DNA from: Glycera tridactyla
Lineage: Eukaryota
Reading direction: 5' to 3'
Assembly (NCBI GenBank): GCA_965644265.1
Contig: OZ286465.1
Span: 22,444,001-22,508,000, forward strand
Length of the DNA stretch: 64,000 bases
Part shown: positions 7,817 through 42,767 of the stretch, piece by piece
Numbering within the stretch: the first letter of the stretch is position 1
How the letters are laid out: the number at the start of each line of letters is the position of its first letter
Made by a program: the position numbers and the translations under genes
Notes under the pieces: model-generated
Told to the model about the DNA's origin: nothing
What the model saw: only the letters and a program-made list of their open reading frames with translations
Databases searched by the model: none

Positions 7817-8032
7817 TATGCCTATTAGACTGTCGGTTTCGTTGAGTACGGCCAGGCTGTTGAGCACTTTTCGTATTCGGGTGGCACTCAACACTTTTTC
7901 ATTGCATACAAATCTCAACGGTCATTTGACTACGTTGAACTCGTTAAACGAAACCTATTCGGGTGGGCTACGACCGTTAGGTAAATTTCCGTCAATGCAC
8001 TTTCAACGAGACCTACCAGTCGAATAGGCCTA
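7817..8032. mobile_element. MITE (family 1, junction copy 'B') at the unit I/II boundary
   Basis: Clearly homologous to 42556-42767 but with many substitutions. Ends tatgcctattagactg...cagtcgaataggccta; 216 bp. Confidence 0.75.
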
Positions 8033-8381
8033 ATGACAACGACAACGACGAAGTCACGGTCAAGGTCAGGTCAGCCTGAGCCAATAAGCGATTGGTAGAC
8101 CAAGAACTATAATGGGAAATGAAATCTAGAGCACTGCCATCCTGGTGATTATGTGGAATAGAAACCTTACTATGTGTATAATAGAAGTACATGTCTGCTT
8201 GGTTCAAACAATGAGCAGCAACTTGTATCGGCAGCTTGTATTCATGCGCCAGTGATGCAGTTCCCCTCACTCGAGTAAACACCACCATCACCTACATAAC
8301 TCCAACTACACCACCACGTTCCACCTACACCAGTATCACCTTTGTGGTGCTCCATTGGCAACAGTTGAATCCAACCCATGG

Positions 8382-8576
8382 TATCTAGGGGTGCAACTCC
8401 ATGAAAAAATGAACTGGAACACACACATAGATTACATTTGCAGCAGGGCCAGTAGAGTGTTATGCATACTCAGACGCAATATTGGTGCTTGCAGTCCAGA
8501 ACTGAAACTTTTATCATATATGATCCTAGTACGACCAATACTAGAGTACAGATCTAGGGCATGGGATCCTCACACT
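8382..8576 (+). mobile_element. LINE (non-LTR retrotransposon) ORF2 C-terminal fragment
   Basis: YLGVQLHEKMNWNTHIDYICSRASRVLCILRR...Y..LVRPILEY....WDPH, the typical post-RT region of CR1/L2/Jockey-group LINEs. Isolated fragment. Confidence 0.85.
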
Positions 8577-9326
8577 TTGGAGTTTGGAGTCGTGTCGACT
8601 GATACCGAAAACAATTGTCGATTGGAATAACATAAATAGCATTCAGCTAATTACATGGTTCAGTGCTAAAAACAAAGGGAATGCATGGTGTGATGTCATC
8701 AAGTCATCTGATTAATTCCATGCACACTCCAATGCCCACTGCCAGTTCTGAAAGCAGCCTGATCATGATCACTGCCTGGTCATGTTCTATGGACAGGGCT
8801 GGCTGGTCCAGGGCATGTCGCAATGTCAGCATTTTCACTTATTCAGTCTCATATAACCCAAGGCGGTTGAGAGGACGTTAGACTCAAACAGGCAAATGAA
8901 CAGTCCACCTCCTAGCATTCGTTCGCTACGGTGAATCATTCAAAATAGGTGAATCTTCCCAAATTTTCTTGAGAGTGCGAACACACCGAGTCCATGCTGT
9001 TGCTGCTGGGTGGCTTGTGATCCAGTTAACCATGTTACCAGATTTTTTTTGCTAAGCATAAATCAGCATTCGATAGTTTGGCATACCAAATTTGACTAAT
9101 AAATGCTCATAATGAGGTCGATCCCGTATTGGTTGTATGAAGAAATAAAACAACTTTGATATCTATACGTTTGCTTATACATTGGATATTCTGGTACAAA
9201 ATCTGCTCCTGTACAAATTCAATATGCAGGACAAAGTAGGGTCAGGCTCAGTGATGCAATCAAACCAAGATGATCCCCACCTATTTCAGTGTAAAATGCT
9301 ACTCTAGTCTAGATGTCCTAGTAAGG

Positions 9327-9606
9327 TAGAGTGGACCTATGTACAGAGACCACTCCTGGTTGCATTGAAAAGTGGTTTTTGGGGACAGGTGGTCTTTGAA
9401 TAGAGGTCATTTTCTCTAGAGGATATCATATTGCAACTCAGGGTGGTTCATCTTTGCAGGTAGGAGGCGATCTCTCGAGCAGGTTTGACTGTACAGGCAT
9501 TGTGCCAGTGATAGAGGTTGTTTTCCGTAAAGAATAATGTCATGTTGCAACTCAGGGTGATCCATCTTTGCAGGTAGGAGGTGATCTCTCGAGCAGGTCT
9601 GACTGT
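9327..9606. mobile_element. Degenerate MITE (family 2, TA-CAGTxAAACC type) with a tandemly duplicated right half
   Basis: Ends gcaggtttgactgta at 9493. The block ttgcaactcagggtg...tctctcgagcagg..tgactgt is repeated up to 9606. Confidence 0.6.
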
Positions 9607-12600
9607 TCAGACAGTAACAGAGATCTTACTCGGCAACCAAATCTTGTGATACATCAGCACAACAGTACCTTCATGAGAATGTGGATTGATCAGTTACTTA
9701 CCATCTTCTTTGCACCACCAGGGCTATACTGTGGCACTCATGCTATTTGAATGTGTGAAATCTAGTTGCTCAAGTCACTGATACTGCCTCTTGGGCCCTC
9801 AATGGATTTAGAGGTAAGAGTTCGTAATTATGAAGAAGAGAAGCGTATTTGGAGTGGTAAACCACAAACTGCTGACAACATGATTCAATATCTATTGACC
9901 CTATTCTCACAGCCGGTTCACTGAATGGTGTTTCGGCAACCTGACACAGGGCTCCTTCTCAGATGGGTGACCGAAATGGACAAGGTTCACCATTCAGTAA
10001 CATACCTGCACACAGATCTATAGGATCTGCACTTCTTGCACAGGAGGTACTTGCATGTGTGTGGACAGCACTGAATGGGACCCTCACATTAGTTCACTCA
10101 GGTGTGAATAGGTACTTGGTATGTTTGTTTGTTTGTTATATGTTGTCACGATACAAAGGGTGAATATGTCTTATTTTCCCTCATGGGGAAAAACTCATGA
10201 GTTAGTAGATTCAGTTCCATCTTCTCTATCTTCTATGATGTTGTGTATTCATTTATCATTGTGGAGAATTCTGTAGTTGTCCTGTTTCTATAATTTAGAC
10301 TTTGTCACATTTGGTATACCCTGTCCATGTATTATGAGGATAGGCAATCTTGGTTTCTGTTCCTGTTTTAGGTTGCCAGGCATCTTCATCAGCAGGTTTT
10401 CCCTGGATGTCTTGGAAACTTGGTTTGGGAGCAAGCTCTAGCGTTTCTTGTTCGTATCCCTGTTCTTCCAGCTATATCATTATCATACTGCGATGTTACA
10501 TGAAATTTGTTTTTATAGTTCCTTGTAGGCTCAGAAATTGGCTGTATAGGAGGGCACTGATCCAGTGTCATATGTGCTTCATGCTGCAGCCCCTTGGATG
10601 TTTGTTCCATTCTAACATGAACTCAAGTCCAATGGCCCCAAATGCAGCAGGGTGTCCAGTTGCAGCTAACAATTGTTGACGTTTTGCAAGAGAATGCATG
10701 CTGCTGTCAATCAAGCAGCAAGGGCTATTGGAATCTGTTTGTAAAGAATATCACATAGCTCTCAATGTACCTTATTCAGATCTCTACTGGTCCTCCGAAG
10801 AGAATTATTCGAGAAACTTCAAAATTCGGCCTCGAATTAAATTCATGGGATAAGGTTCTTGATGCCCGTGCAATTGGTATGGATTTGGATCATTCAAGAC
10901 TTCTCCATCTGGGTCCCCATTGGTTGTTGAAATTCTACTATCAAATTCATCCAGTGCAATTATTGTGATCAGGCCTGATTGCCAGAAGAAAAAAGGAAGA
11001 TGATGCTTATACAATTCCCAACATGTCATTTCACACACTCATACCTTGGAAGAGAACAAGAAAGACATACACTGCCTATTTTGATACATGAAATTTTATT
11101 CAACATACATCAGTGGCATACAAAATAACGAGGAAAGCTTTAATCAAAGTCCTTCTCTTGGAAGGACAGGAGGATTCATTACAAACTTATGTGAAACTCA
11201 AAAAATGTGTTCAACTGTAACATAAACCCTGATGACAAGATGGTTCGTGATTCGATCCATTGCTGAAAGAAGTTCACTTCACTCTATAATCCTATGGCAT
11301 GAAGCTTTCACATCTATCATAGGATCATGATCGAGTTGAGTTCATCCAGCAAAGGATGAATCGGATGCTGGGCATCAGGCGGTTGATGGGGATGCAGGTG
11401 AAGGTGATGCCATCAGTGAATGCCACCAGATACACATCAAGCCAACTAATGATGACGAGTATTGGGAATGAGATACAATGGCACCTGTTCATCAATAAAT
11501 AATCATATGAGTATTATAGCAACTTGAATGTCAGTTGTTAACTCGGATGAGCAGTGTCACTATCTTATCAAAACAGATATACCCATAAGCAATAAGTTGA
11601 ACAAAAATATTTGCAATACTGATAATGAATTTGAGATGGCTGAGGTCCTCACCAAGGTGGTGTGTCTGAGTGGCAAATCACTGAAGGGAGATGACTATGG
11701 CTTATGCCATCCAAGGATGCAATTGGTTTGGGGCCACAAATGGTGCATTGTCGGCTAGCAACGACCCGTAACCTGCCCCACACCAAATATTTAGTGGAAT
11801 AATGATGCCAAGGCTTGATCCACATCATCCGCAGCTTAAAGGAAGTCAGTGTATTAGCTGATGCACCAAATGCCCAACAACCAGTTCCAAAACAATCACA
11901 CAATCAAATGTAAGGATAGAGGTGAATATTGATAACTAGAACAAGAATTGAAAGATATGGAATTACACCAATATCGAACCTATTGCGACTCACCCATCCA
12001 AAAGTAATGATTCTCTTCCATGGCTGATTTTGAAATGATTCTCTCGCATGGCTGATTTTCACCAACAGTCAACACAATTACTAGGAGGCCATGATGTGAA
12101 ACCTCTTGCCAATTAGAGTCAGCAAGAGTAGGCTGACCACTTGTATTCTCTCATTAACATGGTCAGAATTACGTCTAGTTATTCATTGCTCTAAAAACCA
12201 TATGGCTTATTCCCACTTGTCTTCTCCTATATTGATAATCAGAATTAATGTCCAGCTTTCCATTGCTTTCAAATCCAAAGGCTTATTTCCACTTGTCTTC
12301 ACTCATTAAGATAGTCAGAATTAATGTCCAGCTTTCCATTGCTTTGAAATCGAAACCGTGGAAGCAGTGTCACTGCATTAAAATCATATGCTCTTATGGA
12401 CCAAACTCAACTATTAGACTATCTGGCTTCAAACTTTTATGGAATGATGCTCACAGCACAGAGGATGATTAAACAGACAATGTTTGAGACTTCCAAACGG
12501 CTAGAGATGGCACCAAAGCTCTTGCAAAGCATTATCCCTTTCTCATTCTGACCCTTGTTTGGTTAGGGGATTAATGGCTTGTATCAACATGAAGGATTAT

Positions 12601-14399
12601 GTATGCTCAGTGTTCTATGAAAGCTGGATGCTCTACAGGCATCATTCTCAATCTAATAATCAGTGTATTACCTCTGATACATTCATCTTCAACAGTGAAG
12701 AGGGCAACCAAATCCAACTGTGCATCGGACAACATGTACACCACCATTGACTATCAAAAGCTATCCACTAGTCGCTCACAAGCAGATCTGCCTCCCAACA
12801 TTGATTAACAAAGCATCAAAATGGGATTCAAGAGAAAGAGGACACGGTAAAAATTATCACAAATATGATAAACATAATTTGGGTTAAAGATTTTAGTGTG
12901 GCATTACATGGATTGAGAAGACAAATGAAATACACCTTCAATCCATGCTCGATTTTGTAAGTTGGTGAACGAAACATCGCACAGAAGAGGAGGAAGGTGA
13001 AAAACACACTCAAGCCGATTTGAATCAAAATACAGTATTCCCTAGATGATAAGTATGTGTACACATTTCTTGAGGACAGTGGCTGGCTCTCTCTTACATG
13101 CACATGCATGCAATGGTATCATAACAAGGTGCTTGATATGGTCTGTTGTCTTGCAATCAGACCAGCGTTCAGCGAAAAAGAATGGGCCACAAGCAATGTA
13201 CTCTCAGTATACAGCCAAATACATAGACATCATTATGACTGCAATGTTCTTCACTCCACACACCCACGCACTAGCTGTCATATATATTCATATTCAAAAG
13301 CCACATATCTGTTCCACACTTGCACACAATATGGAGTAAGCACAAATTTTATTTTCAACAAGTGAAAGCATCGGATTAAGTGCGGGTGGATGCACCACTC
13401 GCAAAGACTCACTTTGCAAGAATAAATACAGCTATCCTAATCAAGCTCATACTCTGTGACTCAAGCACTCATCAAGATTCCCACATTACACGGCTCACCC
13501 TAGAAGTGTCTATGGTAAATTAAGACATCAATAAACCCAGCAAACTGAAACCACAGATTGATTGAAACATCACCTACGGCCAACAATCCTTATCATCAAT
13601 ACATCTTGTTACCCAAAACTAGCACTATATTATCATAGCCAGCTCAACAAGATTATCCTCCAGATATTGGAAAACCATGTTTGATTAACTCATGTGATGG
13701 TTACTACCATAGTATTCAAACCATACCAAGGCAATGATTATTATTGCAATGACTGGAAACTATGATGATTGCACTAAATCTTGAAACCATAGTAATCATA
13801 CCGGAGTGATATAGTAACTACATATACTGTTACCATGCTGTTTTTGCGCAACTAGCATGGGCTATGTTGGACACTTTTTTTACTGACCATCTCTCCTGTA
13901 CTGACCTGTCAGAATCACAGGGAATAATCATCCCGATCCGAGGTCTAGATTCTTCACAACATTGTGGGATTGGTGGCTTAAACATTAGAGGGCGCCCATT
14001 ACAAACATGCTTTTTTGTGGCTGCATATTTGATGCTGATAGTAGGTGATATTGCATTCCATATGGTCTGACTTTACTGGGTTTAACAGTCGTCAAGTGAA
14101 ACAATAATTAGCAGTGTTCCAATCCGATGACGATTCAGACAACACTCCAAGAGTCAAGATGTCCCCATAAACAAAGTGAACATGATACAATTGCTCGTCA
14201 CTAGCTGCAAGACACAAACTGTACACACACTTGGACTCAGACATATACTCACTCATGAATACATGCACACACACACACAAACACACACACACACACACAC
14301 ACACACAGCTCACTCCGATGCACCAACCACACCAAAGATACTATAATAAGCAGCCATGTTCATACAGTCTAACCAGAGACACTGGTCGGACAAACATCT

Positions 14400-14405
14400 T
14401 TTATT
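14400..14405 (-). terminator. Candidate poly(A) signal AATAAA, unit II
   Basis: Homologous position to 37555-37560. Confidence 0.45.
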
Positions 14406-17400
14406 GACAAATCTGAATAATGACATCTTTCCATCATAGTAAAACATTCAACATTTAACATACAGATATCAAAATAAACAGATTCAGTTCCTTTTTTATA
14501 CATGACTCTCATAATATAGTGAGATGACTAGTATGGTACACACAAGCCACCAAAAAAGACGACTGCCGGATGATGGCAGCATTGACTCAGAACAAAGCAA
14601 CACACTTTAATGGTATACTACACAAAGATGGCCACCAGAACTCTGCTGCCATACCCAAATAACCCACCCTATACTCTTAACTTGTACATAGGACAGTATC
14701 GATGATCATGATTTGCTCTCTCTGATTATATTGATGATTTTGGACAGTAAACGCAATGTGAATATGAGGTAAGTTGGCTTATCCTGCAGAAATTGACACG
14801 AAAGCGCTGACTGGTTTCTGATTGTCCTCTTATACTGACTAGCTACCAAGCAATCTTTGTCATGAAATTCAAATTCTGGCATTATACCTTGTGGTCGTGC
14901 ATTACAGATGTTCTACTGAGACCTTCCCCGTCTTGATTGCATTCTACCCAAATAGAATATCCTTTGTATTGTAATAAGATACCGTTTGTTGGTTTGTTAG
15001 AGTTTAATGGCATGAATCAAGCTGATGGTTATGTATGCCATGCCTTCCAGACCTACTGGGGGTCTCGGCATTGTCACTTGCAGAGACCCTGAACACAAGA
15101 GAGTAGGGAAACAGAAAATCTGTCAGCATCATTGGTTAAAATAGCAGTGATCCGAGCAACCATGCCTGATTCTTCTCTGTTCAAATGCATGACATGGAGT
15201 CATGAAGTGGTTCCGGCTGAACAACAGACTGGTATAATACAAATTCTACAAATAACAGTACAAACTCATATTTACTCAAATATAAACTGACATGGGCCAG
15301 GCATACAAGCACCTTTGTTCATGAAAAACAAAATACTGACAATATAATGTGCAAATCATTAAATGAACAGACTGAAGATAACAAAGAAAAACATTCACCT
15401 GACATCAGATGATGCGAATGCGAAGGCAAATAAAGCAACTGAACAATCAGAAAGCAGAAATGTTGATAAATTGAAGCTACATTCTGAATATGATACCACA
15501 TATTCTTAAAAATCATCTGTTCTGAAACATCCAGCCAGATGGCACCTGAGGACACAAAACAGGTGGACACACGAAGCAAGTGGTTGACAGCCACCATGCC
15601 CCTAATCTAAAAGCCGTCAGGAAGACTCAATTGGATCTCAAAAAATCCATCCAGTTGTGACCTGTTGCGCAATTATTATTTCACATTTCAATTGTTATCA
15701 TTCGAAATCAGACATGGTCCCAGCCATGGATGTATGTTGCCATAATTCCTCAGTGGGTTACCAAAAGGGAGAAGTTTTGCCATCTCACAGGTCCATTTCG
15801 TGTAATCAATGATACAAAAAAATCCCAAACAAACAATTTCTCACTATCTTCATCAAACTGTCCTTCGATTTATCTATTTCTATATGCATTTATCTGTTCA
15901 TCTATTCATCATCATCAATTTTTTGAAATGTCATCTTTCCATGGTGATGCAACAGTGAACTGAATTACGATTTTGATATCATTAGGAGAAACAAAAAAAC
16001 ATTAATAAATAATCAGGATAATTGTTTCGCCTAACCAGACATTTACTTGTACACGCCAATCCACATACGGCTAGCAATTGGTCATAAATTTCAATGGCAA
16101 GTTATATGAAACTGTTGTCAACGCTTATGTTCTCTCATGACAGAGAATGTCACGAGGTCATCAAAAGACAGCGATGCAAGCAGACACATTTCACTGCAAC
16201 TTGAATTATTTAGAACAAGTAACAATACCCTTGTATATCCCACAACACTCACATAATACATGGACAACTGCACATTCCATATTATTCATCGACTGTCTTG
16301 TCCTGCTATGAACACTGTAATCGTTCGAATATACACATTTCAGCGATTGACATTCCAGTCCCATATTTGTGACCAGTATTTCTCTTTAATACACTTTGTG
16401 GATCAGTTGATTTCACACCTGAACTGGCCCATTGCAAAACTATCACTTCTCTCTCCATCAGGTTGGTTTCTCCAATCTCACTCATCATTCAAAAAGAGAA
16501 ATCCACTTTTGACATAGACAGAGAAAACAGTGCGAGAGTCATTTGCCTTTATCCATCAAAATCTGCCACTATTACTCATGATGTTCCCTCAGATTGTGCA
16601 GTGAGTAAACTTTGGTTTCGATTCTGTCAACTTGATGCAGATTTGATGCATTTTCTTTCATCATACCGAGCTGATATGCTCCCTCTTCTAGAGATACTAT
16701 GCTGCTTACAACCTTACACGATTCCATAGAGGTTATTCCTAAGTGACAATAACAAATGGTGTGATCTTATAGCACGTTTAAAAAGCAAGATTCAGCTATG
16801 GCCCATATTGCCACTGTACTGTAAGTGTGATTATGCAAGCACCCATCTATCACTCACACACATGCTCAAGCACACACGATTGCACGCATACCCTCACGCT
16901 CAAGCTCACACTTGCATACACACCTTCACAATGTCTATGTACAGTTCTACGTATGATGATGGGTTTTGGCAGTGAAATACACACATGGCATGAAAACAGA
17001 CATAGGGGGACCAGTGAAAATAATGGACTCATGACTACACCTAGCGCCATCTCTAGACCAAGCAGCATAATTAATCTCTCCTCAGTCCCACCATTAGATG
17101 GCGCTTTCATAAAGCTAATACAGGAACAAAATCTGACTAAAGTGTTTACCACATGCATAGTTGAAGCACAGTTTCAAAAAATATAAGGCAACTTTATTTC
17201 AAAAAATATGATAGTGAGTATATTTTCCGTGAGTGCTGAATAGAACACCAAGATGCCAGTGACAAATGTATATCTAAATATAGTTGTTTTGATTGCATGT
17301 CAAATCGAAAAGAGATATTATCAAGGATCCTTACTGTCTTCCAGATAAACAATATGCAAACATCACTGTTCTGGAGTGAAGTAGATAATCAAAGCATATC

Positions 17401-18771
17401 TCAAGAGAAACTAAAGATTGCTTGCAAGTCAAGAATTTACTTGCTCAAACAGAGAGGATTTTGTGGTCAAGTATACACATATAAGTACACCCATTTGCGA
17501 ATACCTCATCATAAAATTAACAGATCGGATAGGAATGAATCATGAAATTTCTTGAGCTACGGTCCAAGAATGAGTATTCACCACCATCCATACATGCACA
17601 ATCAGCCACTGTTACATGAGTGGCTGATACCATGACTCGGGATCCTATTCAGCACAAACAAAATACTATAACTCATCAACAGAAACCATGCTAGATGCAC
17701 AATGAAGCAAACGTCAGATCAAAACTAAAGGGCCAAAGTGTCAATTCCCGGACATCAATTCTTTTCCAATCATGGTGACAATGCCTGGAGTATCTTGGCA
17801 GGCATGCAATCATCTACCGACCACTGCATGCTTGACAAGAAGCATCATTCACCACCAGGATTTGCAGAAAACAAGCGATGGCTAAGAATTCACACTTAGG
17901 CCAACTAAAGGTGCATTGTCACTTGCTTTGCTCTCGGCCGTTTCTACACAGCATCAATGCTCCTAACAAGTCCACCTTGAATAGCAGAAATTTTTACGTG
18001 GTCCAACATCGACCAATATCAGTCATTTTCCTATCTCAGATCTGGTAATGTCTGCTTCCTTTGGTTTGTGTATGAGACGGGCTGACCTCTTGCCCCCCGA
18101 CTATGACTGCTCCAGCTTCTGTCAGACCAGGACGTCTCAAAGTTACGCACACAAACACGAAATTGAATACGAGTCAAAACAGCACGAAGCAAATCCAGCA
18201 CATGCCACCGGTTAAGTGTTCATTGCAGATTCCTGTGATGTTTTCTTTCGCTCAATGATTTGAAGATCCAGTCCTGGCAGGTACATTTCGGGGTTTAACC
18301 CACATGATGGATTTGAAGGTCCGGGAGGTCCCCTGAGAGCTGCTTAATCCCTGTCGATTCGAAACTGGCTAGCACCTTCTGACCAAGATGACCTGACATT
18401 GTTACATTATCACAAATGCCTGAAATATTTTCACGGTCAATGAACGAAGGAACACTAGCGATTATCTCGAAGCCATCTGATGAACCGGCACTTCCAATCT
18501 CTCGATTCCTACGGAAAATAATGGTGCTTGTCGACCTCTGAACCACCACGAATGACCATGAAGACTGCAGCTTCCAGAAATGAAACAGACCTCCATATTG
18601 CACTTGTTTCTGTGTCTAGATTGGCACATGTCACTGGAGCAGGTTGCAAGCATTTTGTCACACTGGCACACATCCACGCAAGCAGATACATTGATGTAGA
18701 CTCAACCACGAAAACAGCATCTGCTTTGGACACTCGATAATATCAAGGGGGGCCACAGAGTGGATGGTGTA

Positions 18772-18994
18772 TTATACAAAAGTGGAGAGTGCAGACGGGG
18801 AGGCGGCATCGGGCTCTTTCTCTTCTTTCTTCGTCTTGCCGCCGTACTGGCCAATAAAGGACCCGTCCTCGTTGAACTTACCCGGGTCCACCTCCGTGTC
18901 GTAATCGGCCATACTGTCTTCGTCGCTTCCGCCCATTGATCCCAGGCCACCACTCTCCACGGACCCTTGACTCTTCTTGAAGTCAGGCTCATCA
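18772..18994 (-). CDS. Nrg: Duplicated L1-family terminal exon, unit II (intact; usage unknown)
   Basis: Same 223-nt exon, same acceptor and stop, identical protein. Confidence 0.75.
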
Positions 18995-19402
18995 CTGAAA
19001 ACACATCAGAAACACCACACACATGAATATAAAGCATTTCCGAGGTCATACTACCCAAAAAGCACCGCTGCATGAGAAAGGACCTGCAACTTGAAGGCCA
19101 GCTCCTCTTGAGTCATCAAATCTTCACATGGCGATCACTATTCGGTCTCTTATTCAATCCATGTTCTATCGGGCAGAGACCACGATCATGAAAAATAATC
19201 ATGAGAAAGACAAGCAAAAGTAGCAACTAATTGGTTGGCTCTCTAAACATGAAAAGCAATTTGACGTCATCATCATGTCTGGATGCTGTTCCAAACATCA
19301 TTGTCGCAAGAGCTATTCCTCAGCTATCTCATCGGGTCCATGTTGTACAGCTCATGAAGAAATGGGCATTCTTTCGATATCAACAGCAGAGGACAGTGTA
19401 AA

Positions 19403-19618
19403 TATGCCTATTAGACTGTCGGTTTCGTTGAGTACGGCCAGGCTGTTGAGCACTTTTCGTATTCGGGTGGCACTCAACACTTTTTCATTGCATACAAATC
19501 TCAACGGTCATTTGACTACGTTGAACTCGTTAAACGAAACCTATTCGGGTGGGCTACGACCGTTAGGTAAATTTCCGTCAATGCACTTTCAACGAGACCT
19601 ACCAGTCGAATAGGCCTA
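19403..19618. mobile_element. MITE (family 1, junction copy 'B') at the unit II/III boundary
   Basis: Matches 7817-8032 by eye. Confidence 0.75.
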
Positions 19619-19967
19619 ATGACAACGACAACGACGAAGTCACGGTCAAGGTCAGGTCAGCCTGAGCCAATAAGCGATTGGTAGACCAAGAACTATAATG
19701 GGAAATGAAATCTAGAGCACTGCCATCCTGGTGATTATGTGGAATAGAAACCTTACTATGTGTATAATAGAAGTACATGTCTGCTTGGTTCAAACAATGA
19801 GCAGCAACTTGTATCGGCAGCTTGTATTCATGCGCCAGTGATGCAGTTCCCCTCACTCGAGTAAACACCACCATCACCTACATAACTCCAACTACACCAC
19901 CACGTTCCACCTACACCAGTATCACCTTTGTGGTGCTCCATTGGCAACAGTTGAATCCAACCCATGG

Positions 19968-20162
19968 TATCTAGGGGTGCAACTCCATGAAAAAATGAAC
20001 TGGAACACACACATAGATTACATTTGCAGCAGGGCCAGTAGAGTGTTATGCATACTCAGACGCAATATTGGTGCTTGCAGTCCAGAACTGAAACTTTTAT
20101 CATATATGATCCTAGTACGACCAATACTAGAGTACAGATCTAGGGCATGGGATCCTCACACT
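19968..20162 (+). mobile_element. LINE ORF2 fragment (array copy)
   Basis: Identical translation to 8382-8576. Confidence 0.85.
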
Positions 20163-20912
20163 TTGGAGTTTGGAGTCGTGTCGACTGATACCGAAAACAA
20201 TTGTCGATTGGAATAACATAAATAGCATTCAGCTAATTACATGGTTCAGTGCTAAAAACAAAGGGAATGCATGGTGTGATGTCATCAAGTCATCTGATTA
20301 ATTCCATGCACACTCCAATGCCCACTGCCAGTTCTGAAAGCAGCCTGATCATGATCACTGCCTGGTCATGTTCTATGGACAGGGCTGGCTGGTCCAGGGC
20401 ATGTCGCAATGTCAGCATTTTCACTTATTCAGTCTCATATAACCCAAGGCGGTTGAGAGGACGTTAGACTCAAACAGGCAAATGAACAGTCCACCTCCTA
20501 GCATTCGTTCGCTACGGTGAATCATTCAAAATAGGTGAATCTTCCCAAATTTTCTTAAGAGTGCGAACACACCGAGTCCATGCTGTTGCTGCTGGGTGGC
20601 TTGTGATCCAGTTAACCATGTTACCAGATTTTTTTTGCTAAGCATAAATCAGCATTCGATAGTTTGGCATACCAAATTTGACTAATAAATGCTCATAATG
20701 AGGTCGATCCCGTATTGGTTGTATGAAGAAATAAAACAACTTTGATATCTATACGTTTGCTTATACATTGGATATTCTGGTACAAAATCTGCTCCTGTAC
20801 AAATTCAATATGCAGGACAAAGTAGGGTCAGGCTCAGTGATGCAATCAAACCAAGATGATCCCCACCTATTTCAGTGTAAAATGCTACTCTAGTCTAGAT
20901 GTCCTAGTAAGG

Positions 20913-21187: not shown

Positions 21188-24100
21188 TCAGACAGTAACA
21201 GAGATCTTACTCGGCAACCAAATCGTGTGATACATCAGCACAACAGTACCTTCATGAGAATGTGGATTGATCAGTTACTTACCATCTTCTTTGCACCACC
21301 AGGGCTATACTGTGGCACTCATGCTATTTGAATGTGTGAAATCTAGTTGCTCAAGTCACTGATACTGCCTCTTGGGCCCTCAATGGATTTAGAGGTAAGA
21401 GTTCGTAATTATGAAGAAGAGAAGCGTATTTGGAGTGGTAAACCACAAACTGCTGACAACATGATTCAATATCTATTGACCCTATTCTCACAGCCGGTTC
21501 ACTGAATGGTGTTTCGGCAACCTGACACAGGGCTCCTTCTCAGATGGGTGACCGAAATGGACAAGGTTCACCATTCAGTAACATACCTGCACACAGATCT
21601 ATAGGATCTGCACTTCTTGCACAGGAGGTACTTGCATGTGTGTGGACAGCACTGAATGGGACCCTCACATTAGTTCACTCAGGTGTGAATAGGTACTTGG
21701 TATGTTTGTTTGTTTGTTATATGTTGTCACGATACAAAGGGTGAATATGTCTTATTTTCCCTCATGGGGAAAAACTCATGAGTTAGTAGATTCAGTTCCA
21801 TCTTCTCTATCTTCTATGATGTTGTGTATTCATTTATCATTGTGGAGAATTCTGTAGTTGTCCTGTTTCTATAATTTAGACTTTGTCACATTTGGTATAC
21901 CCTGTCCATGTATTATGAGGATAGGCAATCTTGGTTTCTGTTCCTGTTTTAGGTTGCCAGGCATCTTCATCAGCAGGTTTTCCCTGGATGTCTTGGAAAC
22001 TTGGTTTGGGAGCAAGCTCTAGCGTTTCTTGTTCGTATCCCTGTTCTTCCAGCTATATCATTATCATACTGCGATGTTACATGAAATTTGTTTTTATAGT
22101 TCCTTGTAGGCTCAGAAATTGGCTGTATAGGAGGGCACTGATCCAGTGTCATATGTGCTTCATGCTGCAGCCCCTTGGATGTTTGTTCCATTCTAACATG
22201 AACTCAAGTCCAATGGCCCCAAATGCAGCAGGGTGTCCAGTTGCAGCTAACAATTGTTGACGTTTTGCAAGAGAATGCATGCTGCTGTCAATCAAGCAGC
22301 AAGGGCTATTGGAATCTGTTTGTAAAGAATATCACATAGCTCTCAATGTACCTTATTCAGATCTCTACTGGTCCTCCGAAGAGAATTATTCGAGAAACTT
22401 CAAAATTCGGCCTCGAATTAAATTCATGGGATAAGGTTCTTGATGCCCGTGCAATTGGTATGGATTTGGATCATTCAAGACTTCTCCATCTGGGTCCCCA
22501 TTGGTTGTTGAAATTCTACTATCAAATTCATCCAGTGCAATTATTGTGATCAGGCCTGATTGCCAGAAGAAAAAAGGAAGATGATGCTTATACAATTCCC
22601 AACATGTCATTTCACACACTCATACCTTGGAAGAGAACAAGAAAGACATACACTGCCTATTTTGATACATGAAATTTTATTCAACATACATCAGTGGCAT
22701 ACAAAATAACGAGGAAAGCTTTAATCAAAGTCCTTCTCTTGGAAGGACAGGAGGATTCATTACAAACTTATGTGAAACTCAAAAAATGTGTTCAACTGTA
22801 ACATAAACCCTGATGACAAGATGGTTCGTGATTCGATCCATTGCTGAAAGAAGTTCACTTCACTCTATAATCCTATGGCATGAAGCTTTCACATCTATCA
22901 TAGGATCATGATCGAGTTGAGTTCATCCAGCAAAGGATGAATCGGATGCTGGGCATCAGGCGGTTGATGGGGATGCAGGTGAAGGTGATGCCATCAGTGA
23001 ATGCCACCAGATACACATCAAGCCAACTAATGATGACGAGTATTGGGAATGAGATACAATGGCACCTGTTCATCAATAAATAATCATATGAGTATTATAG
23101 CAACTTGAATGTCAGTTGTTAACTCGGATGAGCAGTGTCACTATCTTATCAAAACAGATATACCCATAAGCAATAAGTTGAACAAAAATATTTGCAATAC
23201 TGATAATGAATTTGAGATGGCTGAGGTCCTCACCAAGGTGGTGTGTCTGAGTGGCAAATCACTGAAGGGAGATGACTATGGCTTATGCCATCCAAGGATG
23301 CAATTGGTTTGGGGCCACAAATGGTGCATTGTCGGCTAGCAACGACCCGTAACCTGCCCCACACCAAATATTTAGTGGAATAATGATGCCAAGGCTTGAT
23401 CCACATCATCCGCAGCTTAAAGGAAGTCAGTGTATTAGCTGATGCACCAAATGCCCAACAACCAGTTCCAAAACAATCACACAATCAAATGTAAGGATAG
23501 AGGTGAATATTGATAACTAGAATAAGAATTGAAAGATATGGAATTACACCAATATCGAACCTATTGCGACTCACCCATCCAAAAGTAATGATTCTCTTCC
23601 ATGGCTGATTTTGAAATGATTCTCTTGCATGGCTGATTTTCACCAACAGTCAACACAATTACTAGGAGGCCATGATGTGAAACCTCTTGCCAATTAGCGT
23701 CAGCAAGAGTAGGCTGACCACTTGTATTCTCTCATTAACATGGTCAGAATTACGTCTAGTTATTCATTGCTCTAAAAACCATATGGCTTATTCCCACTTG
23801 TCTTCTCTTATATTGATAATCAGAATTAATGTCCAGCTTTCCATTGCTTTCAAATCCAAAGGCTTATTTCCACTTGTCTTCACTCATTAAGATAGTCAGA
23901 ATTAATGTCCAGCTTTCCATTGCTTTGAAATCGAAACCGAGGAAGCAGTGTCACTGCATTAAAATCATATGCTCTTATGGACCAAACTCAATTATTAGAC
24001 TATCTGGCTTCAAACTTTTATGGAATGATGCTCACAGCACAGAGGATGATTAAACAGACAATGTTTGAGACTTCCAAACGGCTAGAGATGGCACCAAAGC

Positions 24101-25979: not shown

Positions 25980-25985
25980 TTTATT
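25980..25985 (-). terminator. Candidate poly(A) signal AATAAA, unit III
   Basis: Homologous position to 37555-37560. Confidence 0.45.
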
Positions 25986-30346: not shown

Positions 30347-30569
30347 TTATACAAAAGTGGAGAGTGCAGACGGGGAGGCGGCATCGGGCTCTTTCTCTTC
30401 TTTCTTCGTCTTGCCGCCGTACTGGCCAATAAAGGACCCGTCCTCGTTGAACTTACCCGGGTCCACCTCCGTGTCGTAATCGGCCATACTGTCTTCGTCG
30501 CTTCCGCCCATTGATCCCAGGCCACCACTCTCCACGGACCCTTGACTCTTCTTGAAGTCAGGCTCATCA
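30347..30569 (-). CDS. Nrg: Duplicated L1-family terminal exon, unit III (intact; usage unknown)
   Basis: Same 223-nt exon, same acceptor and stop, identical protein. Confidence 0.75.
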
Positions 30570-30977
30570 CTGAAAACACATCAGAAACACCACACACATG
30601 AATATAAAGCATTTCCGAGGTCATACTACCCAAAAAGCACCGCTGCATGAGAAAGGACCTGCAACTTGAAGGCCAGCTCCTCTTGAGTCATCAAATCTTC
30701 ACATGGCGATCACTATTCGGTCTCTTATTCAATCCATGTTCTATCGGGCAGAGACCACGATCATGAAAAATAATCATGAGAAAGACAAGCAAAAGTAGCA
30801 ACTAATTGGTTGGCTCTCTAAACATGAAAAGCAATTTGACGTCATCATCATGTCTGGATGCTGTTCCAAACATCATTGTCGCAAGAGCTATTCCTCAGCT
30901 ATCTCATCGGGTCCATGTTGTACAGCTCATGAAGAAATGGGCATTCTTTCGATATCAACAGCAGAGGACAGTGTAAA

Positions 30978-31193
30978 TATGCCTATTAGACTGTCGGTTT
31001 CGTTGAGTACGGCCAGGCTGTTGAGCACTTTTCGTATTCGGGTGGCACTCAACACTTTTTCATTGCATACAAATCTCAACGGTCATTTGACTACGTTGAA
31101 CTCGTTAAACGAAACCTATTCGGGTGGGCTACGACCGTTAGGTAAATTTCCGTCAATGCACTTTCAACGAGACCTACCAGTCGAATAGGCCTA
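30978..31193. mobile_element. MITE (family 1, junction copy 'B') at the unit III/IV boundary
   Basis: Matches 7817-8032 by eye. Confidence 0.75.
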
Positions 31194-31542
31194 ATGACAA
31201 CGACAACGACGAAGTCACGGTCAAGGTCAGGTCAGCCTGAGCCAATAAGCGATTGGTAGACCAAGAACTATAATGGGAAATGAAATCTAGAGCACTGCCA
31301 TCCTGGTGATTATGTGGAATAGAAACCTTACTATGTGTATAATAGAAGTACATGTCTGCTTGGTTCAAACAATGAGCAGCAACTTGTATCGGCAGCTTGT
31401 ATTCATGCGCCAGTGATGCAGTTCCCCTCACTCGAGTAAACACCACCATCACCTACATAACTCCAACTACACCACCACGTTCCACCTACACCAGTATCAC
31501 CTTTGTGGTGCTCCATTGGCAACAGTTGAATCCAACCCATGG

Positions 31543-31737
31543 TATCTAGGGGTGCAACTCCATGAAAAAATGAACTGGAACACACACATAGATTACATTT
31601 GCAGCAGGGCCAGTAGAGTGTTATGCATACTCAGACGCAATATTGGTGCTTGCAGTCCAGAACTGAAACTTTTATCATATATGATCCTAGTACGACCAAT
31701 ACTAGAGTACAGATCTAGGGCATGGGATCCTCACACT
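31543..31737 (+). mobile_element. LINE ORF2 fragment (array copy)
   Basis: Identical translation to 8382-8576. Confidence 0.85.
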
Positions 31738-32487
31738 TTGGAGTTTGGAGTCGTGTCGACTGATACCGAAAACAATTGTCGATTGGAATAACATAAATAG
31801 CATTCAGCTAATTACATGGTTCAGTGCTAAAAACAAAGGGAATGCATGGTGTGATGTCATCAAGTCATCTGATTAATTCCATGCACACTCCAATGCCCAC
31901 TGCCAGTTCTGAAAGCAGCCTGATCATGATCACTGCCTGGTCATGTTCTATGGACAGGGCTGGCTGGTCCAGGGCATGTCGCAATGTCAGCATTTTCACT
32001 TATTCAGTCTCATATAACCCAAGGCGGTTGAGAGGACGTTAGACTCAAACAGGCAAATGAACAGTCCACCTCCTAGCATTCGTTCGCTACGGTGAATCAT
32101 TCAAAATAGGTGAATCTTCCCAAATTTTCTTAAGAGTGCGAACACACCGAGTCCATGCTGTTGCTGCTGGGTGGCTTGTGATCCAGTTAACCATGTTACC
32201 AGATTTTTTTTGCTAAGCATAAATCAGCATTCGATAGTTTGGCATACCAAATTTGACTAATAAATGCTCATAATGAGGTCGATCCCGTATTGGTTGTATG
32301 AAGAAATAAAACAACTTTGATATCTATACGTTTGCTTATACATTGGATATTCTGGTACAAAATCTGCTCCTGTACAAATTCAATATGCAGGACAAAGTAG
32401 GGTCAGGCTCAGTGATGCAATCAAACCAAGATGATCCCCACCTATTTCAGTGTAAAATGCTACTCTAGTCTAGATGTCCTAGTAAGG

Positions 32488-32762
32488 TAGAGTGGACCTA
32501 TGTACAGAGACCACTCCTGGTTGCATTGAAAAGTGGTTTTTGGGGACAGGTGGTCTTTGAATAGAGGTCATTTTGAGGATATCATATTGCAACTCAGGGT
32601 GGTTCATCTTTGTAGGTAGGAGGCGATCTCTCGAGCAGGTTTGACTGTACAGGCATTGTGCCAGTGATAGAGGTTGTTTTCCGTAAAGAATAATGTCATG
32701 TTGCAACTCAGGGTGATCCATCTTTGCAGGTAGGAGGTGATCTCTCGAGCAGGTCTGACTGT
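32488..32762. mobile_element. Degenerate MITE family 2 (array copy)
   Basis: Copy of 9327-9606 lacking a 5-bp ctcta. Confidence 0.6.
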
Positions 32763-35700
32763 TCAGACAGTAACAGAGATCTTACTCGGCAACCAAATCT
32801 TGTGATACATCAGCACAACAGTACCTTCATGAGAATGTGGATTGATCAGTTACTTACCATCTTCTTTGCACCACCAGGGCTATACTGTGGCACTCATGCT
32901 ATTTGAATGTGTGAAATCTAGTTGCTCAAGTCACTGATACTGCCTCTTGGGCCCTCAATGGATTTAGAGGTAAGAGTTCGTAATTATGAAGAAGAGAAGC
33001 GTATTTGGAGTGGTAAACCACAAACTGCTGACAACATGATTCAATATCTATTGACCCTATTCTCACAGCCGGTTCACTGAATGGTGTTTCGGCAACCTGA
33101 CACAGGGCTCCTTCTCAGATGGGTGACCGAAATGGACAAGGTTCACCATTCAGTAACATACCTGCACACAGATCTATAGGATCTGCACTTCTTGCACAGG
33201 AGGTACTTGCATGTGTGTGGACAGCACTGAATGGGACCCTCACATTAGTTCACTCAGGTGTGAATAGGTACTTGGTATGTTTGTTTGTTTGTTATATGTT
33301 GTCACGATACAAAGGGTGAATATGTCTTATTTTCCCTCATGGGGAAAAACTCATGAGTTAGTAGATTCAGTTCCATCTTCTCTATCTTCTATGATGTTGT
33401 GTATTCATTTATCATTGTGGAGAATTCTGTAGTTGTCCTGTTTCTATAATTTAGACTTTGTCACATTTGGTATACCCTGTCCATGTATTATGAGGATAGG
33501 CAATCTTGGTTTCTGTTCCTGTTTTAGGTTGCCAGGCATCTTCATCAGCAGGTTTTCCCTGGATGTCTTGGAAACTTGGTTTGGGAGCAAGCTCTAGCGT
33601 TTCTTGTTCGTATCCCTGTTCTTCCAGCTATATCATTATCATACTGCGATGTTACATGAAATTTGTTTTTATAGTTCCTTGTAGGCTCAGAAATTGGCTG
33701 TATAGGAGGGCACTGATCCAGTGTCATATGTGCTTCATGCTGCAGCCCCTTGGATGTTTGTTCCATTCTAACATGAACTCAAGTCCAATGGCCCCAAATG
33801 CAGCAGGGTGTCCAGTTGCAGCTAACAATTGTTGACGTTTTGCAAGAGAATGCATGCTGCTGTCAATCAAGCAGCAAGGGCTATTGGAATCTGTTTGTAA
33901 AGAATATCACATAGCTCTCAATGTACCTTATTCAGATCTCTACTGGTCCTCCGAAGAGAATTATTCGAGAAACTTCAAAATTCGGCCTCGAATTAAATTC
34001 ATGGGATAAGGTTCTTGATGCCCGTGCAATTGGTATGGATTTGGATCATTCAAGACTTCTCCATCTGGGTCCCCATTGGTTGTTGAAATTCTACTATCAA
34101 ATTCATCCAGTGCAATTATTGTGATCAGGCCTGATTGCCAGAAGAAAAAAGGAAGATGATGCTTATACAATTCCCAACATGTCATTTCACACACTCATAC
34201 CTTGGAAGAGAACAAGAAAGACATACACTGCCTATTTTGATACATGAAATTTTATTCAACATACATCAGTGGCATACAAAATAACGAGGAAAGCTTTAAT
34301 CAAAGTCCTTCTCTTGGAAGGACAGGAGGATTCATTACAAACTTATGTGAAACTCAAAAAATGTGTTCAACTGTAACATAAACCCTGATGACAAGATGGT
34401 TCGTGATTCGATCCATTGCTGAAAGAAGTTCACTTCACTCTATAATCCTATGGCATGAAGCTTTCACATCTATCATAGGATCATGATCGAGTTGAGTTCA
34501 TCCAGCAAAGGATGAATCGGATGCTGGGCATCAGGCGGTTGATGGGGATGCAGGTGAAGGTGATGCCATCAGTGAATGCCACCAGATACACATCAAGCCA
34601 ACTAATGATGACGAGTATTGGGAATGAGATACAATGGCACCTGTTCATCAATAAATAATCATATGAGTATTATAGCAACTTGAATGTCAGTTGTTAACTC
34701 GGATGAGCAGTGTCACTATCTTATCAAAACAGATATACCCATAAGCAATAAGTTGAACAAAAATATTTGCAATACTGATAATGAATTTGAGATGGCTGAG
34801 GTCCTCACCAAGGTGGTGTGTCTGAGTGGCAAATCACTGAAGGGAGATGACTATGGCTTATGCCATCCAAGGATGCAATTGGTTTGGGGCCACAAATGGT
34901 GCATTGTCGGCTAGCAACGACCCGTAACCTGCCCCACACCAAATATTTAGTGGAATAATGATGCCAAGGCTTGATCCACATCATCCGCAGCTTAAAGGAA
35001 GTCAGTGTATTAGCTGATGCACCAAATGCCCAACAACCAGTTCCAAAACAATCACACAATCAAATGTAAGGATAGAGGTGAATATTGATAACTAGAATAA
35101 GAATTGAAAGATATGGAATTACACCAATATCGAACCTATTGCGACTCACCCATCCAAAAGTAATGATTCTCTTCCATGGCTGATTTTGAAATGATTCTCT
35201 TGCATGGCTGATTTTCACCAACAGTCAACACAATTACTAGGAGGCCATGATGTGAAACCTCTTGCCAATTAGCGTCAGCAAGAGTAGGCTGACCACTTGT
35301 ATTCTCTCATTAACATGGTCAGAATTACGTCTAGTTATTCATTGCTCTAAAAACCATATGGCTTATTCCCACTTGTCTTCTCTTATATTGATAATCAGAA
35401 TTAATGTCCAGCTTTCCATTGCTTTCAAATCCAAAGGCTTATTTCCACTTGTCTTCACTCATTAAGATAGTCAGAATTAATGTCCAGCTTTCCATTGCTT
35501 TGAAATCGAAACCGAGGAAGCAGTGTCACTGCATTAAAATCATATGCTCTTATGGACCAAACTCAATTATTAGACTATCTGGCTTCAAACTTTTATGGAA
35601 TGATGCTCACAGCACAGAGGATGATTAAACAGACAATGTTTGAGACTTCCAAACGGCTAGAGATGGCACCAAAGCTCTTGCAAAGCATTATCCCTTTCTC

Positions 35701-40500: not shown

Positions 40501-41924
40501 AACAATATGCAAACATCACTGTTCTGGAGCGAAGTAGATAATCAAAGCATATCTTAAGAGAAACTAGAGATTGCTTGCAAGTCAAGAATTTACTTGCTCA
40601 AACAGAGAGGATTTTGTGGTCAAGTATACACATATGAGTACACCCATTCGCGAATACCTCATCATAAAATTAACAGATCGGATAGGAACGAATCATGAAA
40701 TTTCTTGAGCTTCGGTCCAAGAATGAGTATTCACCACCATCCATACATGCACAATCAGCCACTGTTACATGAGTGGCTGATACCATGACTCGGGATCCTA
40801 TTCAGCACAAACAAAATACTATAACTCATCAACAGAAACCATGCTAGATGCACAATGAAGCAAACGTCAGATCAAAACTAAAGGGCCAAAGTGTCAATTC
40901 CCGGACATCAATTCTTTTCCAATCATGGTGACAATGCCTGGAGTATCTTGGCAGGCATGCAATCATCTACCGACCACTGCATGCTTGACAAGAAGCATCA
41001 TTCACCACCAGGATTTGCAGAAAACAAGCGATGGCTAAGAATTCACTCTTAGGCCAACTAAAGGTGCATTGTCACTTGCTTTGCTCTCGGCCGTTTCTAC
41101 ACAGCATCAATGCTCCTAACAAGTCCACCTTGAATAGCAGAAATTTTTACGTGGTCCAACATCGACCAATATCAGTCATTTTCCTATCTCAGATCTGGTA
41201 ATGTCTGCTTCCTTTGGTTTGTGTATGAGACGGGCTGACCTCTTGCCCCCCGACTATGACTGCTCCAGCTTCTGTCAGACCAGGACGTCTCAAAGTTACG
41301 CACACAAACACGAAATTGAATACGAGTCAAAACAGCACGAAGCAAATCCAGCACATGCCACCGGTTAAGTGTTCATTGCAGATTCCTGTGATGTTTTCTT
41401 TCGCTCAATGATTTGAAGATCCAGTCCTGGCAAGTACATTTCGGGGTTTAACCCACATGATGGATTTGAAGGTCCGGGAGGTCCCCTGAGAGCTGCTTAA
41501 TCCCTGTCGATTCGAAACTGGCTAGCACCTTCTGACCAAGATGACCTGACATTGTTACATTATCACAAATGCCTGAAATATTTTCACGGTCAATGAACGA
41601 AGGAACACTAGCGATTATCTCGAAGCCATCTGATGAACCGGCACTTCCAATCTCTCGATTCCTACGGAAAATAATGGTGCTTGTCGACCTCTGAACCACC
41701 ACGAATGACCATGAAGACTGCAGCTTCCAGAAATGAAACAGACCTCCATATTGCACTTGTTTCTGTGTCTAGATTGGCACATGTCACTGGAGCAGGTTGC
41801 AAGCATTTTGTCACACTGGCACACATCCACGCAAGCAGATACATTGATGTAGACTCAACCACGAAAACAGCATCTGCTTCGGACACTCAATAATATCAAG
41901 GGGGGCCACAGAGTGGATGGTGTA
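37535..41924 (-). other. Candidate long 3'UTR (~4.4 kb) of the L1-family gene
   Basis: Non-coding sequence between the stop codon and an AATAAA followed by GT-rich sequence. An earlier AATAAA about 1.6 kb after the stop is an alternative end. The true end is not provable from sequence alone. Confidence 0.45.
37555..37560 (-). terminator. Candidate poly(A) signal AATAAA, unit IV
   Basis: Minus strand gtcAATAAAagatgtttg, followed by a GT-rich tract and a (GT)n repeat. Confidence 0.5.
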
Positions 41925-42147
41925 TTATACAAAAGTGGAGAGTGCAGACGGGGAGGCGGCATCGGGCTCTTTCTCTTCTTTCTTCGTCTTGCCGCCGTAC
42001 TGGCCAATAAAGGACCCGTCCTCGTTGAACTTACCCGGGTCCACCTCCGTGTCGTAATCGGCCATACTGTCTTCGTCGCTTCCGCCCATTGATCCCAGGC
42101 CACCACTCTCCACGGACCCTTGACTCTTCTTGAAGTCAGGCTCATCA
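41925..42147 (-). CDS. Nrg: L1-family gene terminal coding exon, gene-proximal copy (unit IV)
   Basis: Acceptor gtgttttcag|. Reads (T)DEPDFKKSQGSVESGGLGSMGGSDEDSMADYDTEVDPGKFNEDGSFIGQYGGKTKKEEKEPDAASPSALSTFV*, with the ankyrin-binding FNEDGSFIGQY motif and a class-I PDZ-type C-terminus. Confidence 0.95.
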
Positions 42148-42555
42148 CTGAAAACACATCAGAAACACCACACACATGAATATAAAGCATTTCCGAGGTC
42201 ATACTACCCAAAAAGCACCGCTGCATGAGAAAGGACCTGCAACTTGAAGGCCAGCTCCTCTTGAGTCATCAAATCTTCACATGGCGATCACTATTCGGTC
42301 TCTTATTCAATCCATGTTCTATCGGGCAGAGACCACGATCATGAAAAATAATCATGAGAAAGACAAGCAAAAGTAGCAACTAATTGGTTGGCTCTCTAAA
42401 CATGAAAAGTAATTTGACGTCATCATCATGTCTGGATGCTGTTCCAAACATCATTGTCGCAAGAGCTATTCCTCAGCTATCTCATCGGGTCCATGTTGTA
42501 CAGCTCATGAAGAAATGGGCATTCTTTCGATATCAACAGCAGAGGACAGTGTAAA

Positions 42556-42767
42556 TAGGCCTATTAGACTGGTCAGTTTCGTTGAGTACGGCCAGGCTAT
42601 TGAGCACTGTTCGTATTCAGGTGGCACCCAACACTTTTTCATTGCATACGAATCTCAACGGTAATTTGACTACGTTGAACTCGTTAAACAAAACCCATCC
42701 GGCTGGGTTACAACCGTTAAGTCCTGCAATGCCCACTCAACGGAAACTGTCCATTCAAATAGGCCTA
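42556..42767. mobile_element. MITE (family 1, intronic copy 'A'), ~33-bp imperfect TIRs, TA ends
   Basis: Left end taggcctattagactggtcagtttcgttgagt versus reverse complement of right end taggcctatttgaatggacagtttccgttgagt. Non-coding, 212 bp. Confidence 0.75.

Follow-up and report, generated by a model that had tools for sequence, protein, structure and literature searches.

Did the four tandem copies of an 11.6-kb block on C17, each including the final exon of an L1-type nerve-adhesion gene, arise by breakage at the tip of a MITE or by homologous exchange within it? Within the window (the whole analysed stretch of 64,000 nucleotides), the flank ...gaggacagtgtaaaTA (ending ...gtgtaaaTA) is present four times, ending at 7818, 19404, 30979 and 42557. 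In three of the four cases it is followed by a 212-bp MITE, here termed J (the "B" of an earlier sequence-only reading), and in the remaining one by a 208-bp MITE, A, downstream of which lies non-repeated sequence belonging to the last intron of an L1-family gene on the minus strand. This confirms the layout described in that reading, with four shared flanks, three leading into identical copies of one MITE and one into A and unique intron. Pairwise identity between units is 98.2-99.4%, the periods are 11,586 and 11,575 bp, and J1, J2 and J3 are mutually 100% identical. The features of the array are as follows.

1-7818: X0, right part (unit positions ~3771-11586) of the leftmost block copy, closing with the TA target dinucleotide
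7819-8030, plus strand: J1, junction MITE of 212 bp flanked by TA at each end; bp 1-~131 (7819-7949) of common origin with A
8033-9319: Y, junction sequence (1.29 kb), with further copies at 19619-20905 and 31194-32480
9320-19404: X1, block copy, whose homology to X0 begins exactly at 9320
19405-19616, plus strand: J2, junction MITE, identical to J1 in sequence
30980-31191, plus strand: J3, junction MITE, identical to J1 in sequence
42558-42765, plus strand: MITE A (208 bp, carrying a 6-bp deletion), which closes the array on the right and lies in the last intron
42558-42689, plus strand: A-left, still within the array homology; 95.5% identical to J-left, with locus-specific variants in common

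Beyond bp ~131, J1 continues as an ordinary "type-2" right end of its family, and the true limit of array homology on the right lies between 42651 and 42690.

A and J are members of a real Tc1/mariner-type (Stowaway-like) MITE family. Its 213-bp consensus, drawn from 30 copies selected for likeness to A, has a perfect TIR of 23 bp (28 bp with one indel), and the genome holds more than 1,800 candidates (1,834-2,242 in a first look) of this short (208-213 bp), non-coding element. TA flanks 20 of the 30 copies on the left and 24 on the right, and is found on both sides of A, J and an upstream copy, C. Scored family copies are 79-89% identical; A is ~80% identical to the other copies, and the closest genomic relatives of J reach 86-89%. 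Among the nearest relatives of J and A are copies at C4:45248760, C32:71748569, C47:20369135 and C34:16244318. Copies are also clustered, with additional members at five of 23 3-kb loci, some of them 4-40 bp apart, which suggests local or targeted insertion.

Set against this family, the left and right parts of the two elements tell different stories. Over the first ~132 bp, A and J have just 5-6 fixed differences (~96% identity; 95.5% over the 138 alignment columns of A-left versus J-left), and each left part is at most 86% identical to the 30 other family copies, whereas over the last ~80 bp A-right and J-right are ~71-78% identical. For A and J, identity on the left exceeds that on the right by 0.242; the largest such contrast in 435 family pairs is 0.172. 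The two elements share an A at alignment column 17 and a C at column 56, states seen in none of the 30 other copies. In the 2.04-Gb genome, a 30-mer from the common left part (up to two mismatches) matched seven local copies and one on C34 only, and a second left-part marker gave matches with 0-1 mismatch at the array locus only. The alignment of A, J and the family that the sequence-only reading had proposed for locating a switch point did reveal one: a maximum chi-square split separates 5 fixed differences in 133 positions on the left from 17 in 75 on the right (permutation p~0.002), which places the A/J switch inside the element, at bp ~95-133. J is a hybrid of A-like and non-A sequence, and this composition supports a chimera in perfect register, probably formed by exchange between two members of one MITE family. 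That J is a plain copy of A, with the whole MITE duplicated, is ruled out by right halves that are 71% alike, and is also contradicted by Y, which is unlike the sequence downstream of A.

The exchange had earlier been placed within a few bases of the TIR start, given a t/g difference at what was taken for the third base (7819 versus 42558). The difference is real, but it falls at base 1 of the element, because the ranges used in that reading included the TA on both sides, and the proposed exchange point fails, as homology runs ~95-132 bp into the element. Since the family has G in 29 of 30 copies at base 1 and in 30 of 30 at the site of the 1-bp deletion in J, both the base-1 G>T and the deletion are derived, later changes in J; the changes private to A, at columns 26 and 71, are CpG transitions. 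The near-terminus differences are sparse later substitutions on a common, locus-specific background. Given the internal switch and these sparse terminal differences, terminal breakage by transposase or microhomology repair, previously preferred over ordinary NAHR, is not indicated. A sparse first-base difference in a repeat can pass for a breakpoint, and the real homology limit, here ~100-130 bp inward, becomes visible only against the family background.

Comparison of haplotypes indicates that the array is still changing. The alternative haplotig C118 carries three block copies and two junctions, and C17 four block copies and three junctions. In C118, the last junction MITE has A states at bp 1, 14, 18 and 62 inside junction-type flanks. 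The patch, 62-245 bp long, is the product of a younger A-to-J gene conversion, and conversion at the array is ongoing. For the old event, crossover and gene conversion cannot be told apart, and because repeated A x J exchanges would push the visible switch rightwards, the primary exchange point itself is irrecoverable. Divergence along the array is uneven. X0-left is 90-93% identical to the inner units, compared to 98.4-98.8% for the rest of X0, with a 482-bp indel forming the left limit of homogenisation, and at base 1 of the MITE divergence steps from at most 1% in X to ~4% in the left part of the element. The possibility that X0-left resembles the units merely through shared transposons was ruled out, as the match is 92-93% and other genomic matches are at most 80%.

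A two-MITE origin led the sequence-only reading to predict a second, B-type element ~3.8 kb left of position 1. No such element is present there. In both C17 and C118 the leftmost copy has an abrupt start at unit position 1504 (window position -3491), with neither the junction MITE nor the 1.29-kb Y in either; word-7 BLAST detected no remnants of B or Y at this boundary, and no second parental element in direct orientation was found there in either haplotype. Across 60 kb of upstream sequence, the family is represented by a single copy, inverted and 83% identical, at -7250 to -7034. The two-MITE origin is upheld in so far as the in-register chimera supports an exchange of family members, but not in its left-hand element, and a second event is needed for the left edge. 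Y itself contains a solo-LTR-like repeat (8058-8281) and a LINE reverse-transcriptase tail fragment (8331-8576); as these two parts only are repeats and 0.74 kb (8577-9319) is unique, Y as pure transposon filler can be ruled out. The unique part is confined to the junctions of the array locus, with no further copy in the 2.04-Gb assembly, and the Y|X junction shows no visible microhomology.

Based on these data, we consider it probable, though far from assured, that the array is the product of ordinary transposon-mediated homologous rearrangement, with an in-register exchange between A and another MITE followed by unequal crossing-over. The array would have been built, or its right edge last set, by homologous exchange in register between two 213-bp MITEs in direct orientation, one being A in the last intron and the other a member with a "type-2" right end adjoining Y. 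Such an exchange would leave at each unit junction a chimeric element composed of ~95-132 bp of A-type left and ~80 bp of the partner's right. Later unequal crossing-over between the 10-kb X blocks could have brought copy number to four on C17 and three on C118 and held the inner parts ~99% alike, with the edges of the array retaining older divergence (X0-left 6-8% from the inner units, A-left ~4% from J-left). There is no parental B or Y at the left end and no other copy of Y, and therefore an extra deletion must be assumed, by which the parental left element and Y would subsequently have been lost from the leftmost unit. Both this deletion and the making of the chimera by the primary rather than a later event are steps that we infer.

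The most serious rival reverses the roles of the two elements, with J native and A chimeric. An ancestor of the form L-X-J-Y-R0-D-R would have undergone non-homologous tandem duplication of X-J-Y, creating the Y|X junction at 1503/1504 and leaving L|X as the original contiguity, and exchange of the last J with a downstream member, D, would have deleted J-right, Y and R0, so that A would consist of J-left and D-right. This history predicts the same chimera pattern, yields the leftmost start at exactly unit position 1504 in both haplotypes with no added assumption, and accounts for the presence of Y at junctions only; J is also about equally far from the family on its two halves (82% identity on the left, 83% on the right). 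However, it likewise requires two events, and the left and right parts of A both exceed the average divergence from the family, as would be the case for a single old element. Copies that join the left-subfamily marker to a type-2 right end are limited to the local J elements, and those that join it to an A-like/type-1 right end are the local A elements and one further genomic copy, a weak hint (n=1) that A may be native and J the chimera. We regard this mirrored history as unlikely, while according it real weight.

Replicative template switching (MMBIR/FoSTeS type), producing a duplication with a templated insertion, appears improbable. Replication would have left A at ~bp 100-130, continued by homeology on a family member elsewhere, copied the right end of this partner along with 1.3 kb of its flank (Y), and then returned to the start of X. 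A single event would cover the in-register chimera, a left edge lacking both B and Y, and the difference in phase of the two edges (unit 1504 on the left, unit ~130 on the right), and the mechanism is often invoked for Alu/Alu rearrangements (PMC6071635). Nevertheless, the donor should retain Y, the 0.74-kb unique part of which occurs nowhere else in the 2.04-Gb assembly, and the Y|X junction is free of visible microhomology.

We find it quite improbable that the primary break lay at the very left end of the MITE, whether transposase-initiated, by alternative transposition or by microhomology repair. J would at first have been a pure second element, its A-like left part acquired later, as gene conversion extended into it from the neighbouring 10-kb X homology. 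A-to-J conversion over the X/MITE border does happen, as in the C118 patch, the divergence step at base 1 is consistent with such a history, and class II elements are able to generate tandem duplications directly (PMC3744419). However, no datum demands that the break be terminal: similarity among the X copies is too high to place recent exchanges in their last few hundred bp, the earliest informative site is a substitution private to J, the left boundary is without B, and the new junction holds only the invariant TA, a flank that is uninformative for this MITE family. The more specific proposal that transposition machinery made the first duplication by acting on the termini of two nearby MITEs, with a break at the TIR tip and the A-like left as a conversion overprint, strikes us as highly improbable; if true, MITE-driven tandem duplication of an exon would have a natural example in an animal. 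The locus resembles alternative transposition of the Ac/Ds type in that a class II element marks the duplication junction and the two participants are neighbouring members of one family. In that system, however, junctions lie exactly at the termini and carry diagnostic 8-bp target duplications, whereas here array homology reaches ~100-130 bp inside the element, with uninformative TA flanks. Two independent insertions, in the same orientation into the same TA of paralogous X copies, are scarcely credible, as the clustering of family copies (5/23 loci) would favour them but the same dinucleotide and orientation would be required twice and the locus-specific common left half would be left unexplained.

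The preferred reading, homologous exchange between A and another MITE followed by unequal crossing-over, has a counterpart in human transposable-element-mediated rearrangements, including Alu/Alu events (AAMR) (PMC6071635, PMC9675761), the junctions of which carry chimeric elements (PMC6071635). As in AAMR, the two repeats concerned are dispersed, short (200-300 bp) and diverged (~80-85% identical) and lie in direct orientation; one full-length in-register chimeric element marks the junction, and the copy-number change of ~10 kb takes in an exon. Unlike AAMR, the repeat is a DNA-transposon MITE in an invertebrate rather than a SINE, and the event appears old, followed by array expansion and homogenisation, with one parental element gone. 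Concerted evolution by unequal crossing-over gives rise to tandem arrays with less-homogenised edge repeats. The inner units here, ~99% alike, with the left edge 6-8% and the right edge ~4% off, and the variation in copy number between haplotypes follow this pattern, but, unlike typical arrays of this kind, there are 3-4 units only, and a 482-bp indel bounds homogenisation at the left. The locus would represent a clean invertebrate case of a short DNA-transposon repeat as a substrate for homologous exchange, one that also displays ongoing gene conversion and a haplotype copy-number difference, and it leaves current understanding unchanged.

What the array multiplies is the terminal exon, comprising the FIGQY tail and the 3' UTR, of the L1-type adhesion gene, located as follows.

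41925-42147, minus strand: coding part of the terminal exon, L1CAM/neurofascin-type gene (Pfam Bravo_FIGEY)
7186-7408, 18772-18994 and 30347-30569, minus strand: intact copies of the terminal exon

The exon has an acceptor (...ttttcag), a FIGQY motif, the C-terminus STFV and a stop, and matches PF13882 (Bravo_FIGEY) at 41928-42146 on the minus strand (E=1.1e-11, 46 bits versus a cut-off of 23.8). FIGQY is the ankyrin-binding motif of the cytoplasmic Bravo_FIGEY region in the L1CAM/neurofascin/neuroglian family. Copy-specific variants lie at, among other positions, 41421, 41476, 41498 and 41740. The stretch was found in no DNA run from other individuals; four runs gave only transcript-like contigs, which stop at the exon acceptor. 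Leftwards, the exon runs on into a long 3' UTR. An ORF on the plus strand proposed as a "first exon" (ATG at 7689, 19275 and 42428, ending at a GT just before the MITE) is unsupported, because low-depth contigs cross it without a break and it is the minus-strand exon that is expressed. The predicted upstream exons of the gene lie to the right of 47299, and the window contains a run of N at 50389-50526.

Compared with itself, the window proved to hold a tandem array (periods 11,586 and 11,575 bp; identity 98.2-99.4%) in which copies of a ~10-kb block (X, the leftmost being X0) are joined by a junction MITE (J) followed at every junction by a 1,287-bp sequence (Y). The sequence-only reading had correctly described four occurrences of the flank ending in gtgtaaaTA, continued three times by J and once by A, the MITE beyond which the sequence is non-repeated. 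The four X copies differ from one another by ~1% or less, with no gradient toward the MITE.

MITEs of the array (window positions)
7819-8030, 19405-19616, 30980-31191: J, 212 bp, all three copies identical
42558-42765: A, 208 bp, at the right end of the array

For edge analysis, 60 kb upstream of the window and a 72-kb unplaced contig (C118) were added. Evidently representing the other haplotype, C118 aligns collinearly with the locus at 92-99% identity; it carries two junction MITEs compared to three on the window's contig (C17), indicating that copy number differs between haplotypes. The first C118 block copy, and no other copy, holds a 174-bp inverted duplication of adjoining sequence (reverse complement 19763-19946; unit positions 10341-10514).

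An alignment was made of A, J (each from both haplotypes) and 30 further members of the family. In its first 138 columns, A matches J at 95.5% identity; neither exceeds 86% against any of the 30, and the states that A and J have in common at columns 17 and 56 occur in 0/30. Over the last 88 columns their identity is 71%, the right end being of the common 'type-2' form in J and a diverged one with a 6-bp deletion in A. The left-minus-right identity contrast is 0.242 for A/J, against a maximum of 0.172 among 435 family pairs. The maximum chi-square switch falls at A 42690 / J 7950 (permutation p~0.002), with 5/133 fixed differences to its left and 17/75 to its right, and the last rare state common to both lies at A 42651. 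Genome-wide, a 30-mer from the common left part (up to 2 mismatches) matched only seven local copies and one on contig C34, and matches to a second left-part marker (0-1 mismatch) were confined to this locus. The alignment, switch point and locus-specific markers together imply that homology between the array and its right flank runs in register ~95-132 bp into the MITE before it ends, and J appears from its sequence to be a chimera of an A-type left part and a type-2 right end. The sequence-only reading had placed the exchange within a few bases of the TIR start, and had named a hybrid with an internal switch as the contrary outcome; the alignment with the family shows such a hybrid.

The terminus looked like a breakpoint because the first informative site is a private substitution of J at base 1; the A/J difference previously assigned to the third base is real, but this is its position. 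The few left-part differences are young: J's base-1 T and its 1-bp deletion are derived (29/30 and 30/30 family copies have G), and CpG transitions account for two changes specific to A. Since the last several hundred bp of X are nearly without informative sites, recent exchanges there are not placeable. In the last junction MITE of C118, bp 1, 14, 18 and 62 have A states, the sequence is J-type from bp 71 on, and its X flank (-419 to -175) is junction-type. This is a 62-245 bp conversion patch spanning the X/MITE border, with A as donor and J as recipient.

A B-type MITE (B being the earlier name for J) had been predicted at the left boundary. Instead, X0 has an abrupt start at unit position 1504 (window -3491) on both haplotypes alike, with neither a B-type MITE nor Y there and no remnant of either by word-7 search, so this key prediction fails. 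Across the 60 kb upstream, just one further member of the family occurs, inverted and 83% identical (window -7250..-7034). The left part of X0 (unit positions 1504-3497) shares 90-93% identity with the inner units. This is real paralogy, since no other match in the genome exceeds 80%; on the right side of a 482-bp indel, X0 reaches 98.4-98.8%. This indel coincides with the homogenisation limit (93% vs 99%). The leftmost block also holds a sub-repeat, with 3 copies on C118 and ~1.4 on C17.

Sub-repeat of the leftmost block
Window -3491 to about 0; C118 (reverse complement) 5282-12958: 2.68 kb, unit positions 2338-4516 plus the 482-bp insertion

Every viable model combines a second event with an exchange, homologous or homeologous and in register, that involves two members of the family; of the proposed two-MITE origin this exchange is supported, its terminal break and left element are not. 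In one, a B x A exchange would duplicate Y-X and make J a chimera, B-Y being lost afterwards at the left. Also viable is a plain X-J-Y duplication; a later deletion joining the last J to a MITE further downstream would then make A the chimera. In a genome pattern count, only local J copies join the left marker to a type-2 right end, and one copy elsewhere joins it to an A-like right end; this subfamily test hints weakly that A is the native element. Template switching, with templated insertion from a now-lost donor, is viable as well. Edge divergence is 6-8% at the left and ~4% at the right (95% CI roughly 2-9%), values compatible in age. Since any later exchange between A and J would shift the visible switch rightwards only, a primary break at the MITE terminus stays formally conceivable, though the data give no reason to invoke it.

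The array's origin is an ordinary kind of event, and the locus matches repeat-mediated rearrangement, after which a small array underwent concerted evolution. Alu/Alu rearrangements likewise are repeat-mediated and leave a chimeric element at the junction (PMC6071635; PMC9675761). In contrast, alternative-transposition duplications have junctions at element termini (PMC3744419), whereas here homology continues into the MITE.

A and J belong to a large family (>1,800 candidate copies at a first look through the genome) whose 213-bp consensus, 23-bp perfect TIR and TA flanks indicate a Tc1/mariner-type MITE. Two or three copies occur in 5/23 fetched 3-kb loci, some 4-40 bp apart, which suggests local hopping, insertion beside existing copies, or small MITE arrays.

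Clustered family copies (locus positions)
L011: 1501-1929
L019: 1251-1717 and 2434-2648
L025: 1503-2023
L012: 1502-2647
L015: 400-1716

Four public runs gave transcript-like contigs that all terminate at window 42149, a minus-strand acceptor (...ttttcag), their further letters lying elsewhere. The exon encodes the cytoplasmic-tail end of an L1CAM/neurofascin-type protein (Pfam Bravo_FIGEY, E=1.1e-11).

Terminal coding exon (window positions, minus strand)
41925-42147; copies 7186-7408, 18772-18994, 30347-30569: L1CAM/neurofascin-type, FIGQY motif, PDZ-type C-terminus STFV

To the right of the exon lies the gene body; A is 411 bp into the last intron, and each unit carries the terminal exon and 3' UTR. 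If collinear, one contig (4,968 letters) would give a 3' UTR that reaches at least ~3.9 kb further left. The 72-residue reading frame is kept with identical sequence, and the acceptor is intact, in 4/4 C17 copies; one C118 exon copy has two substitutions. Alleles of both X0 and C118 are seen in the transcripts, which therefore do not single out the expressed copy. The extra terminal exons downstream of the gene could in principle act as alternative 3' exons.

Every unit has a 76-bp tandem repeat of 2.5-2.9 copies (window 549-741, 12137-12355, 23718-23936, 35293-35511), which probably belongs to the duplicated exon's 3' UTR region. At window 45300-45499 and 46100-46299, summed contig depth reaches thousands, and odd joints are numerous in each of the four runs; these intervals hold short intronic elements that are highly repeated and lie outside the finding. 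A run of 138 N occupies 50389-50526.

Y adjoins J and comprises a solo-LTR-like repeat, a LINE fragment and 0.74 kb found, across the whole 2.04-Gb assembly, only at this locus's junctions.

Repeats within Y (window positions)
8058-8281: 224-bp repeat, same offset at other junctions
8331-8576: LINE reverse-transcriptase tail fragment, adjoining the 224-bp repeat

Relatives of the 224-bp repeat elsewhere form same-strand pairs ~4.1 kb apart (e.g., C7:17136519/17140655), and it is probably the solo LTR of a small LTR element.
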